IMG/VR virus record: IMGVR_UViG_3300032236_002285
Span: 310,001 to 374,000 of that record
Direction: 5' to 3' (one strand)
DNA length: 64,000 nt
In this document: piece by piece, positions 2,303 to 50,949 of the stretch
Layout: every line of letters starts with the position of its first letter
How positions within the stretch are numbered: position 1 is the first letter of the stretch
Notes under the pieces: generated by a model
What the model was told of the DNA's origin: nothing
The model's database searches: none
Seen by the model: the letters and a program-made list of their open reading frames with translations, nothing else
Program-made: the position numbers and the translations under genes

Positions 2303-3057
2303 TAAGCGGATTTTGTATCAGTTGATAAGTTATTTAGCTTATCAACTGCTGCATAACCCATACCAAATCTATTTACCATAGGTAACATAGAGTTAATTTG
2401 ATCAGATGTTCTAACACCACCAGAGGCTTTAATATTCATTTGCTTACCAGAATCTTTGATTGTGTCAAACATAATTTGAATCTTATTCATTTCAGCACCA
2501 ACAGCTACTTTACCGGTAGATGTTTTAATAAAATCAGCACCGGCTTCTAAACAAATATCAGTTGCTATTTTAGTTTCTTCTTCTGAAAGTAATCCAGATT
2601 CAACAATAACTTTAAGTATAACTTTTTCACCTTCTTTATTAGTATTAGAGTGACAAATATTAACCAATGAAGAAACTTCTTCAACTAAGAAATCATAATT
2701 TTCTTTCTTATTCTCAATTAACATTTTATAATTAAGAACCATATCAACCTCATCAGCACCATCAGAAATAACCTGTCTAGTTTGATCTTCTTTTTGAGTT
2801 AGTGATAAATTACCTTCTGGGAAAGAAACAACCGTACAAACTAAAACCTTTGAATGTATTAATTGTTCTTTAGCTAAGGCAACGTGTTTAGGAAGAACAC
2901 AAACTGATTTTACACCTAGCATATCAGCTTTTTTACAAAGGTTGATAATATCTGCGTCAGTTGCTGAGTCTTCTAATAAAGTATAATCAATCATGTTGTT
3001 ATACTGGAACATATTGTTCTCTTTAATAAATTGTGTGTAGTTCTTAATCTTTTTCAT
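2299..3057 (-). CDS. deoC: Deoxyribose-phosphate aldolase with N-terminal CTS-like tag
   Basis: IDYTLL, GADEVDMV, LKVIVESG, GADFIKTSTGK, IKASGGVR. Likely start MKKIKNYTQFIKE at 3057. Confidence 0.93.
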   Translation of the reverse strand: MKKIKNYTQFIKENNMFQYNNMIDYTLLEDSATDADIINLCKKADMLGVKSVCVLPKHVALAKEQLIHSKVLVCTVVSFPEGNLSLTQKEDQTRQVISDGADEVDMVLNYKMLIENKKENYDFLVEEVSSLVNICHSNTNKEGEKVILKVIVESGLLSEEETKIATDICLEAGADFIKTSTGKVAVGAEMNKIQIMFDTIKDSGKQMNIKASGGVRTSDQINSMLPMVNRFGMGYAAVDKLNNLSTDTKSAY

Positions 3058-7474: not shown

Positions 7475-8523
7475 ACTTCAAAATTTTTAGATTTTTTTAA
7501 CTTTTCAAGAACTAATTTTTCGTCAAGTTCAATCTTCTTAGGTATTTTTACTGATATCTTGATATATAAATCACCTAAGCCATATTGTATATCAGGAATA
7601 CCCTTACCACTAATTCTAATAACTTTACCATGTTCTGTTCCTGGCTCAATAGCCACTGCCATTTCACCATGAGGTGTTTTAACTTTAACATTTGAGCCAA
7701 TAATAGCATCTATCACAGAAATAGTTTTTTCTACAATAATATTATTATTCTCTCTCTTAAATGATAAGTCTCTTTCCTCTTCAACGATAATATGTAAATC
7801 ACCTGGTTGACCATTTCTAATGTAATTACCAAAACCTGTCATATTCATTTGCATTCCATTTGAAACACCCATTGGTATTTCAACTTCTACGGTTTGATCT
7901 TTAACAATAGTACCATCACCTTTACAATCATTACATTTTGTATGAACAACTTGACCACTACCCGCACAATCTGGACAAGTTGTTGCTTGTCTTATTTGAC
8001 CAAATGGTGTATTCTGAACTACGGTTCTTTGACCACTACCATTACAAGGAATACAATTTCTAACATCTGTACCACCCTTACCATCACAAGATGTACATTT
8101 GTCTTGTCTTTTATATTTTAATTTTTTTGTGGTGCCTTTTAATATCTCATCGATTGTTAACGTGACTTTAATTCTTAAATTAGAGCCTCTACTTTGTGGT
8201 CTTTGTCCACCATATCTTTGATTGAAAGCGTTGCCAAATATATCACCAAAGTTGCTAAAAATATCTTCCATTCCACCAAAACCACCATTATATGATGAAC
8301 CGGGACCAGATGCTGATCCAAATCTATCATAATTAGATTTTTTATCTGGTGTTGATAGAACATCATAAGCTTCAGCAGCTTCTTTGAACTTAGCTTCCGA
8401 CTCAACATCTCCATCATTTTTATCTGGGTGATATTTCATAGCCATCTTACGATAAGCTTTCTTAATTTCATCCGGTGTAGCATCCTTTTCAACACCTAAT
8501 ATGTTGTAGTAATCTTTACTCAT
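7471..8523 (-). CDS. dnaJ: DnaJ chaperone
   Basis: J-domain with HPD, G/F-rich region, four CxxCxGxG repeats, C-terminal domain. Confidence 0.97.
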   Translation of the reverse strand: MSKDYYNILGVEKDATPDEIKKAYRKMAMKYHPDKNDGDVESEAKFKEAAEAYDVLSTPDKKSNYDRFGSASGPGSSYNGGFGGMEDIFSNFGDIFGNAFNQRYGGQRPQSRGSNLRIKVTLTIDEILKGTTKKLKYKRQDKCTSCDGKGGTDVRNCIPCNGSGQRTVVQNTPFGQIRQATTCPDCAGSGQVVHTKCNDCKGDGTIVKDQTVEVEIPMGVSNGMQMNMTGFGNYIRNGQPGDLHIIVEEERDLSFKRENNNIIVEKTISVIDAIIGSNVKVKTPHGEMAVAIEPGTEHGKVIRISGKGIPDIQYGLGDLYIKISVKIPKKIELDEKLVLEKLKKSKNFEV

Positions 8524-8836
8524 ATGTTAATATTTGTCTTATTTTTGAATCTCTATATATTTGTACGGGTGTTTCGGTCAGTTTTATAGTCACCCATCTA
8601 TTGTAATTTATTCTAAACTCATTTTTATAAATTTGAGCTGACATAATTGGAAGTTCTTCTATAATTTCTTTGAAGATAGTATTAGCTTCTTCTAACTTCC
8701 AATCTTTCATCTCAGTTAGCCTTTTACAGAAATAATCCATACAAGGTGAAGCCGTATCTATAACATTCCCTAAATACTTATCTCCTTTGAATCCATCTGG
8801 TGCTGATTCGGATATTTCAACATACCAATCTATCAT
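8516..8836 (-). CDS. Hypothetical protein with C-terminal tag (RDSKIRQIL)
   Basis: ORF track; in the grpE-dnaJ operon. Confidence 0.7.
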   Translation of the reverse strand: MIDWYVEISESAPDGFKGDKYLGNVIDTASPCMDYFCKRLTEMKDWKLEEANTIFKEIIEELPIMSAQIYKNEFRINYNRWVTIKLTETPVQIYRDSKIRQILTYE

Positions 8837-9432
8837 AACAACTCATCTTTATTTTCTTCAAATATTTGGTTTATATTTTCTTCTCTTTTCCATTGTTTCA
8901 ACAAACTATCAATTGCTTGATCGTAGTCATTAATATCTCTAACTCTTTGAACTAAACCAGCTACATAATTATCAACTATTAAAGTCAATGTTTCTACCGT
9001 TCTGTCAATATGTTCGAAGTGTTCTAAGCAATTTTTTGACTTGATAAACATATCAATTAGATAATCAATAAACTCATCTACATTAAAATACATAGTAAAT
9101 AACTTGTATCTTTTATTTTCTGGTAGAACTCTACCATAGTTAGAATCTTTGAAAAGAGTTGGTGGATCAATAAAGACCTTACCAAAAACTCTTCTAATAG
9201 CAGGTAGAACCAAATCCAAAGTTTCATCTTCTTCTAAATATAAGGCGCCTTTGAATTCTTCTCTATCAAATAAGTGATATTTTTTATCAATAACATATTC
9301 TAATAAAGACTTAAATGAGTTAAGATATTTACTATCTATACCCTGACAAAGTGCGTCAATTATAGTTTTTTTGTAAACTACATCTTTATAAAGATCTAAG
9401 AAACTTTTTTTATTCTCTACCTTTTTAGACAT
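8833..9432 (-). CDS. Hypothetical protein with near-C-terminal tag (REENINQIF)
   Basis: ORF track; in the grpE-dnaJ operon. Confidence 0.7.
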   Translation of the reverse strand: MSKKVENKKSFLDLYKDVVYKKTIIDALCQGIDSKYLNSFKSLLEYVIDKKYHLFDREEFKGALYLEEDETLDLVLPAIRRVFGKVFIDPPTLFKDSNYGRVLPENKRYKLFTMYFNVDEFIDYLIDMFIKSKNCLEHFEHIDRTVETLTLIVDNYVAGLVQRVRDINDYDQAIDSLLKQWKREENINQIFEENKDELL

Positions 9433-16881: not shown

Positions 16882-18225
16882 ATGAAGCTATTTAGATATA
16901 AAGAATTTTTAAGAGAATCATTGGAGTCAAAAAACTACAATATTCCCACATATGAACAAGCACTTGAACTTTGCTCAGGTGAAGAATCCCCATTTTATGA
17001 ATCTAAGATGGTTGTTGATGGGTTTAATGTATCTGTATTTAACTACCGTCTTGCTCAATATAAAGACTTTGCTAATCCTATTCCAGAAAAACCAGAGTTG
17101 AAAGGCTACGAAATGAGAGGTTTGACTTTTGTTTTTAATGAAGATGGTTCTTTATTCAATAGATATGTACTACTTGAAAAGTTCTTTAACTTAAATCAAG
17201 TACCAGAATCTTTATATTCAGTTGTTAAGAACTATAAAATTAAATTTGTGAATAACAAAGAAGATGGTTCTATTGCTTCATTTATTAAACTACCAAACGG
17301 TAAAATCGTTGGTAAATCTAAAATGGGGTTTGATAATGACCAAGCTGAAGGTATTAATCGTATTTATAAAACTAATAATCAAATCAAAAGTCTTGTTAAA
17401 TGGGCTTTAGATAATGATATTGTGCCTATATTTGAATATGTAGCACCAAACAACCGTATTGTATTAAGATACCCAGGTGAAGAATTAATCTTATTGAGAT
17501 TAAGAGATAATAAAACAGGTAAACATATTGATATTAGAGATCACTTAGATAAGGTTGGTGATATTAGAATTGCGCCATTTGAAGATGAAGTAAAAGACTT
17601 GGATCAATTAATTGAGTTGACAGCTACTCAAGTAGATAAAGAAGGTTCAATTGTTACTTGCGAAGATGAAATGGGTAGAGACTTTTTCTTTAAGTTAAAG
17701 ACTCCTTGGTATTGTGAACGTCATGGTTTACTTACTGAAGATCTTTATAGAGAGCATGTTATTATTGGTTATATCTTAGATGATAAGATAGACGATATCT
17801 TAGGTCAAGTACCAGAAGATGAAAAAGAAGCACATGAAAGAATTAATAAGATTATTTCTATTGTTAAGAAAACCATATCTGACAAAGTGTCAGAAATTGA
17901 AAAAGCTTACGAACAATTTGTCAAGTCTGGTATGACTAAAAAAGAATATGCTCTAAAGCATAGAGTTGGTAACCCAAACTTTGCCTTTGTGATGAATATG
18001 GTTAAGGCTGATGATTTAAGGAAGATGTCTAAGGAAGAAATCCTTGACATTTATGATATTATGGAAGACTATGAAAAATCATTACAAAGATGTGAACCAT
18101 ATGAAATGGCTAAAGAATGGTTAAGAGATATGACTAAGAGATTACACATTGCTAGAGAATGGTTACAAACAAAAGATAAAACTTTGTTTTTCCAAGATCC
18201 AGAAGAAAATGATGATGATAACTAA
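16882..18225 (+). CDS. T4 Rnl1-like RNA ligase with CTS-like N-terminus
   Basis: RGLTF, LEKFFNLNQ, KEDGS (motif I), FEYVAPNNRIV, EG, KLKT; starts MKLFRYKEFLRES; TAATATATA at 16869-16877. Confidence 0.85.
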   Translation: MKLFRYKEFLRESLESKNYNIPTYEQALELCSGEESPFYESKMVVDGFNVSVFNYRLAQYKDFANPIPEKPELKGYEMRGLTFVFNEDGSLFNRYVLLEKFFNLNQVPESLYSVVKNYKIKFVNNKEDGSIASFIKLPNGKIVGKSKMGFDNDQAEGINRIYKTNNQIKSLVKWALDNDIVPIFEYVAPNNRIVLRYPGEELILLRLRDNKTGKHIDIRDHLDKVGDIRIAPFEDEVKDLDQLIELTATQVDKEGSIVTCEDEMGRDFFFKLKTPWYCERHGLLTEDLYREHVIIGYILDDKIDDILGQVPEDEKEAHERINKIISIVKKTISDKVSEIEKAYEQFVKSGMTKKEYALKHRVGNPNFAFVMNMVKADDLRKMSKEEILDIYDIMEDYEKSLQRCEPYEMAKEWLRDMTKRLHIAREWLQTKDKTLFFQDPEENDDDN

Positions 18226-44487: not shown

Positions 44488-44988
44488 ATGATATCACTCA
44501 ATAAAGAATATAATCAAATTGTGAATCTTGTAAAGTTCAATGTGAATTTCAGTAAGTTTATTCATAATAATGAACTTTTGAGTCATGATCCTTCTTATAT
44601 TCTTGAAAAGTATAATCACTGGATTGGCTTTGAACCAAGGGTTGAGTATAAAATGTACACACCAGATGATATGATTACTTTTTTTCTGAAATATGGTAAA
44701 AGGTGGGCAACATATGATATGTATTGTAAAGTTGAACCAAGTATTTCTAAAAGAAAAAGTGGAGTTAAGAATATTTTGATGTATCTTTACTCAACTCAAA
44801 GTATGAACCTTATAACAATGGTTGATAAGTTTGAAGAATATATCGGTCCAATTAGTATGATATCAGATACTTCAAATAAACCGGGGCTACATCCTAAAAC
44901 AGAAGAGTTTGCTTTGAAGGTATTAGAAGAAAATAAAGACAATGTAAAAGTTGTTTTACGAGATATGAAAATTAGTAACTTAATATAA
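44488..44988 (+). CDS. Hypothetical protein with C-terminal tag (RDMKISNLI)
   Basis: ORF track; TATATTTG at 44476-44483. Confidence 0.7.
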   Translation: MISLNKEYNQIVNLVKFNVNFSKFIHNNELLSHDPSYILEKYNHWIGFEPRVEYKMYTPDDMITFFLKYGKRWATYDMYCKVEPSISKRKSGVKNILMYLYSTQSMNLITMVDKFEEYIGPISMISDTSNKPGLHPKTEEFALKVLEENKDNVKVVLRDMKISNLI

Positions 44989-45200
44989 ATTAAAGGACCT
45001 ATCGCTGGTGGTAACACTGGAGGAAGTTCGCGACTACAGAACCTAACACGGGAGAATAAGTAAAGAAATTGAAAGTTCGTTTGCACCGAGGAAGTAGCAA
45101 CACATACAGACCTAGAGTGTCGGTTCCTCTATGATGGTCGGGTTGTGGCATAGATAAATGATGGGATAAAACAGGATCGCGGCTACACTTGATTTATATT
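44982..45200 (+). ncRNA. rnpB: Minimal RNase P RNA (type-A-like catalytic domain, strongly reduced S-domain, no P18/P19)
   Basis: P1 44982-95/45188-200; P2 CCTATC/GATGGG; P3 with GTAA loop; P4 AGT(T)CGCGA/TCGCGGCT with bulged U; P5 CTAC/GTAG; P6 GAACC/GGTTC; P15-P17 with GGU; AGATAAATG and ACAG..TCGCGGCTA conserved regions. Confidence 0.85.
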
Positions 45201-45243
45201 ATTTTACTAAAACTTTTAAGCATATTTGATACTATAATTGAAC

Positions 45244-45813
45244 ATGGATAAAATTTGGATCGTTTATAACAAGGGAAGTTATAAAAAGAAATACAGGATA
45301 TTCAAAACTGAAGCCGATATGGCTAAGAATATCAGTGATAGTGACAGGTACACTATATTAGAATATGAGTTGAAGTCCTCAACCGTAGCATCTGACTACA
45401 TGAAATCTAAAGAAAGAGATACTCAACTTAGAACTATCTTAGGTGAGTTATCAGAACATGAAACTAATGGTCTTAAACTAATAGAGCTTTATGATGCTTT
45501 AGTTCCTGTTAATCCTAATGATAGATACAATCGTAAACAAAATCAGATAAACCATCTTAAAAAAATAGTATCTGATAAAAAAGCATTTGCTAACTATTTG
45601 GTTAACAACAAAAAACAATTCTTTCAAGTTTCTGATAGTTTAGAATGGGTATTGTCAATACTTAAATGTCATAACTTCCAAGATTATATTTATGATTCTG
45701 CAAGGTGGGATTCTGTTAAAAGGACTTATGTTAAAGTAGACAACGCATCTGATGCACTAAAGGAAAATTTCAAATTAGCAAAAGCCGAATTAAAAAAGAT
45801 TAAAAAGAAATAA
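45244..45813 (+). CDS. Hypothetical protein with an internal copy of the tag (RDTQLRTIL)
   Basis: ORF track; AAACTTT-N14-TATAAT at 45210-45236. Confidence 0.7.
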   Translation: MDKIWIVYNKGSYKKKYRIFKTEADMAKNISDSDRYTILEYELKSSTVASDYMKSKERDTQLRTILGELSEHETNGLKLIELYDALVPVNPNDRYNRKQNQINHLKKIVSDKKAFANYLVNNKKQFFQVSDSLEWVLSILKCHNFQDYIYDSARWDSVKRTYVKVDNASDALKENFKLAKAELKKIKKK

Positions 45814-50828: not shown

Positions 50829-50859
50829 TTTGCTATTTGAAAAAGTTTTACTATCTTTG
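50829..50859 (+). promoter_or_regulatory. Bacteroidota promoter TTTG-N19-TATCTTTG driving the tRNA
   Basis: Canonical spacing; 10 nt upstream of the tRNA 5' end. Confidence 0.7.
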
Positions 50860-50869
50860 TAAAACAATT

Positions 50870-50949
50870 GCGGGTAGAGTCTAATGCGGCGTGGATGTCG
50901 CGGGCGCCTCTAAAACGTCTGGCATCGGGTTCAAATCCTGCTATCCGCA
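50870..50949 (+). tRNA. Atypical tRNA with CUA anticodon (amber-suppressor type); no encoded CCA
   Basis: Acceptor GCGGGTA(G)/(C)TATCCGC; anticodon loop CTCTAAA on GGGCG/CGTCT stem; T-loop TTCAAAT; discriminator A followed by CTA; non-canonical D region. Confidence 0.75.

Follow-up and report, generated by a model that had tools for sequence, protein, structure and literature searches.

We identified a single-copy, GC-rich, non-coding gene on the + strand of the 64-kb window (the whole stretch of 64,000 nucleotides that was analysed), which is part of a 476-kb IMG/VR contig. The gene lies between two ORFs on the same strand, and its G+C content is 43-46%, against 20-30% in the surrounding DNA. 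The window also holds a tail fibre gene, T4-type topoisomerase II subunits and Rnl1, at normal coding density, and reading through TAG or TGA does not improve coding. The original prediction had interpreted this stretch as a phage-borne minimal RNA of RNase P, the enzyme that trims transfer RNAs, and every pairing that it listed exists (Table 1). However, the segments AAAGAAA and UGAAAG, which it proposed as possible remnants of CR-II/III, are not conserved, since this part of the molecule is variable or deleted in relatives. In addition, the "odd tRNA" that it noted at 50870 is only a sub-threshold tRNA-like gene. A sigma-70 promoter and terminator scan found nothing convincing for the RNA in the window.

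Table 1. Features of the RNase P RNA locus, in window coordinates. Cell counts are for 43 non-redundant homologues unless stated otherwise.
Feature	Coordinates	Strand	Description	Support
Upstream ORF	44488-44988	+	166 aa; conserved neighbour in this megaphage clade only; function unknown, not RnpA-like	Directly upstream on the same strand in 23 loci; no Pfam or PDB match; AF2 model all-helical, pLDDT 52.6
Whole RNA gene	44983-45199	+	217 nt, P1 to P1; the only copy in the window	Family covariance model R1 matches only 44959-45209 (+), 228.5 bits; RNaseP_arch aligns end to end over 44985-45197
P1, 5' strand	44983-44995	+	44983-90 pairs with 45192-99 and 44993-95 with 45188-90, with a small internal loop between; contains the stop codon of the upstream ORF	7 of 8 outer and 2-3 of 3 inner pairs changed on both sides
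P2, 5' strand	44998-45003	+	CCUAUC, pairs with GAUGGG at 45160-45165; crosses P4, forming a pseudoknot	254/258 cells canonical, all 6 pairs covary; 99.5% paired in the model-based alignment
P3	45005-45020	+	Hairpin with a GUAA loop; length varies in the family (CUG-GAAA-CAG in the smallest; extended with an internal loop in LR745206)	
CR-I with P4, 5' strand	45020-45033	+	GAGGAAGUUCGCGA; AGU (45025-27) and CGCGA (45029-33) pair with UCGCGGCU (45177-84); bulged U45028	343/344 cells canonical, 5 of 8 pairs covary; U45028 is U in 43/43; family consensus AGGAAgUUCgcgA; aligned with E. coli M1 nt 61-75
P5, 5' strand	45034-45037	+	CUAC, pairs with GUAG at 45094-45097	172/172 cells canonical; nearly invariant, one compensated variant (CAAC/GUUG in relative L026)
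P6, 5' strand	45039-45043	+	GAACC, pseudoknot with GGUUC in the L17 loop at 45122-45126	215/215 cells canonical, 3 of 5 pairs covary; UAGCU/AGCUA in L026
Remainder of the specificity domain	45047-45090	+	5-bp P7-like stem (45047-51/45086-90), conserved asymmetric internal loop (GAG / CGUUnnnA), one hairpin (45054-56/45076-78) with a variable top	Stem 205/215 canonical, 4 pairs covary; inner hairpin 100% paired in the model-based alignment, 2 of 3 pairs covary
J5/15	45098-45100	+	CAA; A45099 aligns with E. coli A248	C 43/43, A 42/43, A 43/43; aligns with E. coli C247 A248 A249
P15, P16, P17 and L15	45101-45147	+	P15 (45101-04/45144-47), P16 (45109-12/45136-39), P17 (45113-17/45127-31); L15 3' side GGGU at 45140-45143, with GGU at 45141-43 equivalent to E. 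coli G292 G293 U294	P15 166/172 and P16 136/141 canonical, each with 3-4 covarying pairs; first G of GGGU 39/43, GGU 43/43
J18/2 (CR-IV-like)	45152-45160	+	AGAUAAAUG; no P18 (4 nt where E. coli has 29)	Consensus AGAuAAAUG; E. coli has AGAUGAAUG; collinear with E. coli M1 nt 327-338
J2/4 and P4, 3' strand (CR-V)	45166-45184	+	AAAACAGGAUCGCGGCU	Consensus AaAACAgAAUcgcGGcUA; aligned with E. coli M1 nt 344-363
Downstream ORF	~45238-45813	+		
tRNA-like gene	50870-50949	+	Possible substrate; CUA anticodon, oversized D region; follows a TTTG...TATCTTTG promoter-like motif	Rfam tRNA 24.4 bits (threshold 29), E=0.0031; ARAGORN silent

On a single sequence the fold is not special (minimum free energy z-score 0.19), and the minimum free energy is no better than that of shuffled sequences on either strand. 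Therefore, the evidence comes from comparison. We found about 85 homologues in phage and metagenome contigs; the first pattern scans also brought many chance hits in coding DNA, which were discarded by eye. In 43 non-redundant homologues we counted 47 pairs, of which 1915/1990 cells (96.2%) are canonical and 35 pairs show changes on both sides, whereas shuffled columns give 79.9% canonical, with 0/500 reaching the observed value, and slid partners give 32-44%. P1, P4 and P6 were counted with our own script. An independent count on a model-based alignment of 70 distinct sequences gave 98.1% paired positions and a covariation score of 0.533, against 0.156 when shuffled (0/500) and 0.05-0.08 when slid. 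RNAalifold found P1, P3, P4 with its bulge, the remaining stem of the specificity domain and P15-P17 unaided, and both the P2/P4 and the P6 pseudoknots covary. The RNA is on the + strand, as indicated by 130 G.U cells against 14 A.C cells. The family model R1 was built on an RNAalifold consensus that chose P2; it therefore omits P1 and P4, and it adds a local hairpin inside CR-I that shows no covariation and was rejected.

The RNA is homologous to bacterial type-A RNase P RNA but falls below the curated Rfam thresholds. The whole window gave no hit at gathering thresholds, and an 801-nt segment gave none at E<=10. When the 227-nt stretch was searched alone, the RNase P clan (CL00002) was the only significant match, with RNaseP_arch scoring 19.8 bits against a threshold of 84 (E=4.5e-4) over the full model length. 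Relatives are best matched by the bacterial type-A model: against RNaseP_bact_a, the 214-nt L026 scores 48.9 bits (E=2.8e-12) and another family member, L128, scores 43.5 bits, whereas only a longer, 305-nt phage relative (L003), which is also hit by R1, passes the threshold of 100, at 101 bits. R1 itself does not reach E. coli rnpB. These results show that curated covariance-model thresholds hide a family with at least 85 members in public data.

Compared with E. coli M1 RNA (377 nt; RF00010), the phage RNA has P1, P2, P3, P4 with a bulged U, P5, P15, P16 and P17 in the same order, together with the P6 pseudoknot, CR-I, the J5/15 CAA, the L15 GGU, the AGAUnAAUG motif and CR-V. However, P7-P14 and CR-II/III, which would dock the tRNA elbow, are replaced by one 5-bp stem plus a hairpin: 40-83 nt lie between the P5 strands in the family (56 in the window), against about 167 nt by a similar measure in E. 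coli. The spacing between P15 and J18/2 seen in the window is shared by 32 of 43 relatives, while the other 11 have a P18-like insert of 25-38 nt with GNRA-type loops; P18 is dispensable in some bacteria, and its P8 partner is absent here. The family spans 195-269 nt. Moreover, two P4 positions that are near-universal in bacteria (E. coli A67-U359 and G68-C358) are G-C and U.G here and vary in the family, which could affect metal binding.

The only natural exception known for the presence of the specificity domain is archaeal type-T RNase P RNA of Pyrobaculum and other Thermoproteaceae (Lai et al. 2010, cited in PMC7191817; PMC13462272), which is reported to remain active. As type T has archaeal protein partners (Pop5, Rpp30, L7Ae) and is the only RNase P of the cell, whereas the phage RNA is of bacterial type A, with P6/P16/P17, the L15 GGU and an RnpA encoded in the same genome, the reduction is independent and convergent; the type-T model of Rfam was not the reported match. 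The architecture is essentially that of an engineered E. coli catalytic-domain construct, which still cleaves pre-tRNA, though with lower efficiency (PMC5839562), but the phage family is natural and keeps a short conserved stub that such constructs lack. Reduced cellular RNase P RNAs, such as those of Mycoplasma fermentans without P12 and of CPR bacteria lacking P12-P14 and P18, also escape default covariance-model thresholds, but they are longer and keep most of the specificity domain (P7-P11, CR-II/III), and loss of P12 alone is already considered exceptional (PMC8172020).

In other lineages the gene sits inside same-strand tRNA arrays. Of 87 family loci, 28 hold 216 tRNAs, all of them on the strand of the RNA, which is often inside the array; in 18 loci a same-strand tRNA lies within 1 kb, and several RNAs directly abut a tRNA 3' end. 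The closest complete relative, the deposited 635-kb phage LR745206, carries the RNA at 502,102-502,296 and has 59 tRNA genes, 58 of them on that strand. In the clade of the window, however, the gene is not next to tRNAs, and no tRNA reaches the curated thresholds in the 64-kb window. In addition, only 30% of the associated phage tRNAs encode CCA, so the conserved GGU is not obviously needed at the precursor stage. These tRNA arrays, like tmRNA, belong to the trend for megaphages to carry their own translation and tRNA-maturation toolkit, although only tRNAs and a tmRNA were reported from Rfam searches of megaphages (PMC8172020).

We then searched for a protein subunit. The conserved upstream ORF was considered as a possible partner, but it is not RnpA-like, and other recurrent neighbours gave no RNase P-related family, although one clade has a T4-type PNKP just upstream. 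A search of the phage collection with E. coli RnpA found only host contamination in records labelled as phage. However, outside the window, the same 476-kb contig (L151) encodes a 99-aa RnpA (L151:1495-1794; Pfam PF00825, 50 bits against a cutoff of 22.3) with the RNR motif KRAVDRNRIKRLMKE, located beside ClpP rather than rpmH/yidC. An RnpA is also found in LR745206 and in the contig of another relative, L029. The phage therefore carries genes for both subunits, and the host RnpA invoked in the original prediction as a possible partner need not be assumed. An rnpA was found in only 8 viral contigs against 24 that carry the RNA, although this protein search finds only fairly close relatives.

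Taken together, these results support the interpretation that the gene encodes the RNA subunit of a phage-encoded RNase P, which descends from the bacterial type-A ribozyme, keeps the whole catalytic domain and has shed the specificity domain except for one short stem-hairpin, as well as P18. We consider this likely, although there is no biochemical or transcript evidence, and the host presumably has its own RNase P, leaving the need for a phage enzyme unexplained. We infer that the RNA is transcribed on the + strand, probably following the upstream ORF here, whereas some relatives use their own Bacteroidota-type promoter and others sit in tRNA operons. It would then fold into the catalytic core, bind the ~100-aa RnpA encoded elsewhere in the same genome, and remove 5' leaders from the many phage pre-tRNAs; smaller phages in which we found no rnpA would presumably use host RnpA. 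Without a specificity domain to dock the T-loop/D-loop elbow, it would recognise substrates through the acceptor stem, the pairing of the tRNA 3'-RCCA with the GGU, and the grip of the protein on the leader.

Two alternatives seem unlikely but possible. Firstly, the RNA might be a catalytically dead look-alike that soaks up host RnpA or competes with host P RNA to shut down host tRNA maturation, or a scaffold that brings the phage RnpA to other targets. Loss of the specificity domain lowers activity in engineered RNAs (PMC5839562), the P4 base identities differ from the bacterial consensus, the score against curated models is very low, and the protein-binding regions (P2-P3, J18/2, J2/4) are all retained, as a decoy would require. 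However, a decoy needs only the protein-binding surface, whereas residues that matter for chemistry and substrate docking (the bulged U, the A248-equivalent, the L15 GGU and the P6/P16/P17 geometry) are invariant, nearly so, or covarying across about 70 distinct sequences. Furthermore, a phage-encoded RnpA makes sequestering the host protein pointless, and a position inside same-strand tRNA operons fits processing. Secondly, the RNA might belong to an active RNase P whose main substrates are phage mRNAs, operon transcripts, tmRNA or other structured RNAs, the lost specificity domain having broadened or changed specificity towards simple hairpin or pseudoknot substrates. Bacterial RNase P does cut tmRNA, 4.5S RNA, phage antisense RNAs and mRNAs (PMC11143913), tRNA-elbow recognition is gone, and tRNAs are not adjacent in the clade of the window. 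On the other hand, genomes of this clade carry many tRNAs elsewhere, as in LR745206, other loci lie close to tRNAs, and the RCCA-pairing GGU is invariant; nor does this alternative exclude tRNA processing. A cellular origin, by mis-assembly, mis-binning or decay of a host gene, is very unlikely and already largely refuted: although CPR bacteria have divergent, helix-poor RNase P RNAs (PMC8172020), the one hit in a pattern scan of 185,579 species genomes is on a contig binned as Ca. Roizmanbacteria, and one paralogue (in L014) lacks CR-I and is a pseudogene-like copy, that single hit is a 3-kb MAG contig made of 13 tRNAs, the window holds phage genes, the RNA is found in 24 IMG/VR contigs, including several of 300-490 kb, and in LR745206, flanking phage ORFs are syntenic, the rnpA sits beside ClpP, and strong purifying selection with compensatory changes rules out a pseudogene.

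It is probable, though catalysis remains to be shown, that megaphages and other tRNA-rich phages, probably of Bacteroidota, encode a complete and functional RNase P of their own, consisting of a 195-270-nt type-A ribozyme that works without a specificity domain and a ~100-aa RnpA. We found no report of a phage-encoded RNase P in the literature searchable without subscription. If this reading is correct, it would be the first virus-encoded RNase P and the smallest natural bacterial-type RNase P RNA, and a second, independent natural experiment alongside Pyrobaculum type T showing that tRNA-elbow recognition is dispensable. A natural bacterial-type ribozyme of about 200 nt with its cognate protein is attractive for structural work and for asking how substrates are chosen without the specificity domain, and is also useful for compact guide-directed RNA-cleavage tools. 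The phage might gain capacity for maturing dozens of its own tRNAs when it floods the cell with them, independence from a host enzyme that is shut off or attacked, or altered specificity. RNase P is regarded as a strictly cellular and organellar enzyme, and phage tRNAs have been the textbook substrates of the host enzyme since its discovery; a phage that brings both subunits changes that picture and extends the set of translation functions that viruses can carry.

The putative RNase P RNA gene is located between two ORFs on the same strand and stands out at 43-46% G+C in a 20-30% background. All the pairings that the original prediction had proposed for a catalytic core of bacterial RNase P RNA are present where they were placed. 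However, taken alone the sequence proves nothing. Its minimum free energy is no better than that of shuffled copies on either strand, Rfam found nothing in the whole window or in an 801-nt excerpt, and ARAGORN found no tRNA in the window. We therefore turned to homologues. A sensitive BLASTN search against deposited phage genomes hit a single record, the 634,780-bp uncultured phage LR745206, in which only the RNA part matched (72.5% identity), and the two-sequence alignment already showed compensated changes in P1, P2, P4 and the stub stem that closes the shortened middle region. Pattern scans built from the conserved single-stranded motifs recovered, in addition to the contig that carries the window (IMGVR_UViG_3300032236_002285, 476,236 bp), about two dozen further IMG/VR contigs of 15-490 kb, 73 metagenome contigs from lakes, sea water, groundwater and sludge, and one contig among 185,579 species genomes, which is a 3-kb MAG fragment consisting of 13 tRNAs. 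Chance matches in coding DNA were discarded by inspection. The coordinates of the features discussed here are listed in the table below.

Table. Location of the RNase P-like RNA, its remnant stem, neighbouring genes and related loci
Feature	Sequence	Position	Strand	Remarks
RNase P-like RNA	window	44982-45200	+	
Alignment to the full-length RNaseP_arch model	window	44985-45197		
Covarying 5-bp stem of the specificity-domain remnant	window	45047-51/45086-90		
Upstream ORF	window	44488-44988	+	directly upstream of the RNA in 23 loci of the megaphage clade
Downstream ORF	window	about 45238-45813	+	
T4-type RNA ligase 1	window	16882-18225	+	phrog_562, 1e-55
tRNA-like gene	window	50832-50949	+	Rfam tRNA 24.4 bits against 29
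RnpA	L151 (part of the window's own contig)	1495-1794; within 438879-442169 of IMGVR_UViG_3300032236_002285	+	99 aa; PF00825, 50 bits
T4-type polynucleotide kinase-phosphatase	L046 (locus of one clade)	8497-9402	+	PF25109, 9e-43
Split RNase P-like RNA gene	L053 (IMGVR_UViG_3300033069_001170)	8606-9340	-	insert of roughly 450 nt
Two RNA copies	L014 (phage locus)	1870-2095 and 2362-2646	-	one intact, one lacking CR-I
Two RNA copies	L106 (phage locus)	44-292 and 472-745	-	tandem, full-length
GC-rich element	L044 (family locus)	about 2385-2480	+	repeated in L049, L050 and L054

When RNAalifold was applied to 15 sequences without any hint, it returned P1, P3, P4 with its one-nucleotide bulge, a stem closing the shortened middle region, P15, P16 and P17, and 26 of its 41 pairs had compensatory changes. 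We then counted the helices of the original prediction on 43 sequences sharing less than 93% identity, with slightly refined registers for P1, P15-P17 and the stub. Of 1990 cells in 47 pairs, 1915 (96.2%) are canonical, and 35 pairs show changes on both sides, while column shuffles give 79.9% canonical and never reach the observed value (0/500), and sliding the partner by 1-3 columns gives 32-44%. P4 is 343/344 canonical with five covarying pairs, and the P6 pseudoknot is 215/215 canonical with three covarying pairs, one lineage having UAGCU/AGCUA instead of GAACC/GGUUC. In P2, which crosses P4, all six pairs covary, whereas P5 is almost invariant, with a single compensated variant. A further pair count on a model-derived alignment of 84 matches (70 distinct) gave 98.1% paired, 23 of 30 pairs with double changes, and a covariation score of 0.533, against 0.156 for shuffles (0/500) and 0.05-0.08 for slid partners. 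This alignment is fitted to the model and thus leans towards the structure; however, the MAFFT-based counts are free of that bias. G.U pairs outnumber A.C cells 130 to 14, so the + strand is the RNA. Length differences between relatives are concentrated in P3, the top of the stub hairpin and the P18 position, and include lengths that are not multiples of three, which is inconsistent with coding sequence.

When only the 227 nt were searched, Rfam's RNase P clan was the single significant match, RNaseP_arch aligning over its full length at 19.8 bits (E=4.5e-4), far under the 84-bit threshold. Other family members connect more firmly to the bacterial type-A model, namely, a 214-nt relative (L026; 48.9 bits, E=2.8e-12), another member (L128; 43.5 bits, E=1.9e-10), and a 305-nt RNA on a 109-kb viral contig (L003), which passes the curated threshold at 101 against 100 bits, shares the family's J5/15-P15-L15 signature and is found by the family model. 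The conserved blocks are collinear with E. coli M1 RNA: CR-I (nt 61-75), C247-A248-A249, G292-G293-U294, AGAUGAAUG and CR-V. Within the family, the bulged U, the GGU of L15 and two of the three J5/15 CAA positions are identical in all 43 sequences, and the middle A is conserved in 42 of 43. The presence of P6, P16 and P17 makes this RNA a type-A derivative. Homology with RNase P RNA is therefore secure, although Rfam's score criterion for membership is not satisfied.

Between the two P5 strands the family has 40-83 nt, 56 of them in the window, while a similar measure in E. coli, from the end of CR-I to the P5 3' strand, gives about 167 nt. The remnant consists of the covarying 5-bp stem, a conserved asymmetric internal loop (GAG on one side, CGUUnnnA on the other) and a covarying 3-bp hairpin whose top varies freely. 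The original prediction had suggested that two short motifs in this region may be remnants of CR-II/III; however, they lie in the variable top and are absent from many relatives, so this suggestion is not supported. P18 is absent in the window and in 32 of 43 relatives, while eleven relatives have a 25-38-nt insert there. Measured P1 to P1, the family spans 195-269 nt, and the window's RNA is 217 nt. One further departure concerns P4, where the pairs equivalent to E. coli A67-U359 and G68-C358 are G-C and U.G, and vary within the family. Some phages carry two copies of the RNA. In L014, the intact copy has a P18-like insert, while the second copy lacks CR-I and the P4 5' strand and sits inside a 21-tRNA array. 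In L053, the 5' half and the 3' half of the split gene carry P4 strands that match each other through a private covariation (CGCCA/UGGCG), and the insert opens with an ORF whose N-terminus looks like a NUMOD4/HNH homing endonuclease. It may be an intron or a homing-endonuclease insertion in a ribozyme gene.

The window is phage DNA, as it holds a tail-fibre protein, both T4-type topoisomerase II subunits, a T4-type RNA ligase 1, an HNH endonuclease and a large phage-only protein family, with a coding density of 87.5% in the standard code. In the window's clade the RNA follows a conserved 155-185-aa ORF of unknown function, whose invariant residues include Q10, N13, Y37, K41, W73 and H135. This protein gave no Pfam or PDB match and only a poor, all-helical model, so it is not an RnpA look-alike. 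In other clades the RNA sits in or beside tRNA arrays: 28 of 87 loci contain 216 tRNA genes, every one on the RNA's strand, 18 loci have a same-strand tRNA within 1 kb, and some RNAs start a few bases after a tRNA 3' end. LR745206 has 59 tRNA genes, 58 of them on the RNA's strand. In L044 and the three loci that share its GC-rich element, the element is located directly after the RNase P-like RNA and before tRNA-Ala, and is closed by a 9-bp stem (GGAUAGACG...CGUCUAUCC); its nature is unknown. tRNA-repair enzymes also travel with the RNA, as in addition to the RNA ligase 1 of the window, one clade has the T4-type polynucleotide kinase-phosphatase immediately upstream of the RNA. The tRNA-like gene of the window is below threshold in Rfam and was not reported by ARAGORN. 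It has a CUA anticodon like an amber suppressor, a 7-bp acceptor stem, an oversized D region (21 against 13 nt) and no encoded CCA, and is preceded by a TTTG...TATCTTTG motif of the Bacteroidota promoter type. However, reading TAG through does not visibly improve coding in the window.

About a quarter of the RNA genes are preceded by the Bacteroidota -7 box TAnnTTTG at a fixed distance, 34-50 nt before CR-I (14 of 60 against 7.9% of control windows), and about half are followed by a T-rich tract. This result suggests Bacteroidota hosts and, in those cases, independent transcription. On the other hand, the window's copy has no such box and probably rides on the transcript of the upstream ORF.

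To look for a protein subunit, we searched the collected sequences with E. coli RnpA using TBLASTN, which gave one weak hit in LR745206. The ORF there is a 103-aa protein with the RNR motif, and it matches Pfam Ribonuclease_P over its full length at 49.7 bits against a cutoff of 22.3. It has 294 metagenomic relatives of about 96-117 aa, some on contigs of 120-480 kb, and a profile of 28 of them found eight viral contigs. One of these is the window's own contig, whose RnpA has the motif KRAVDRNRIKRLMKE and is flanked by a ClpP-family protease rather than the bacterial rpmH/yidD/yidC neighbours. Another is the 483-kb contig that also carries the RNA (L029), and two others come from the same samples as further RNA-bearing contigs. 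Three phage genomes thus carry both subunits on one molecule. No rnpA was found for the smaller RNA-bearing phages by this search, which reaches only fairly close relatives, and those phages may use the host protein. Records labelled as phages, including MG065691, MG065686 and OR850986, contain a bacterial rnpA 97-99% identical to that of E. coli (one of them is labelled a Campylobacter phage); these are evidently host DNA or mislabelled entries, so they are not genuine phage rnpA genes.

The best-supported reading of these results is a phage RNase P, although expression, assembly and catalysis, as well as the selective reason for carrying the enzyme, are inferred. In this reading, the RNA folds into the type-A catalytic core, binds RnpA through the retained P2-P3, J18/2 and J2/4 surface, and then cuts pre-tRNA leaders. 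Substrates would be held by the acceptor stem, the RCCA-GGU pairing and the protein's contact with the leader, rather than by the tRNA elbow. However, only 30% of the neighbouring phage tRNAs encode CCA, so the invariant GGU is not fully explained. As the E. coli C domain alone is active at reduced efficiency (PMC5839562), and type-T archaeal RNAs without an S domain are active (PMC7191817), the architecture is plausible as an enzyme. We also considered the alternatives that the RNA is a catalytically dead decoy, or that it is an enzyme aimed mainly at non-tRNA substrates. Cellular contamination or a pseudogene is largely excluded by the data.

We found no report of a phage- or virus-encoded RNase P RNA or holoenzyme in the full-text literature, subscription-only papers being outside the reach of our searches, although JGI's pipeline has already labelled some of the small proteins 'ribonuclease P protein component'. 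It has been stated that Rfam finds only tRNAs and a tmRNA in megaphages, and that loss of P12 is known only from Mycoplasma fermentans, Thermoproteaceae and two CPR genomes (PMC8172020), while minimal type-T RNAs have been restricted to Thermoproteaceae (PMC7191817). We regard the RNA described here as belonging to a bacterial type-A RNase P that lacks the specificity domain and is carried by viruses together with its protein.
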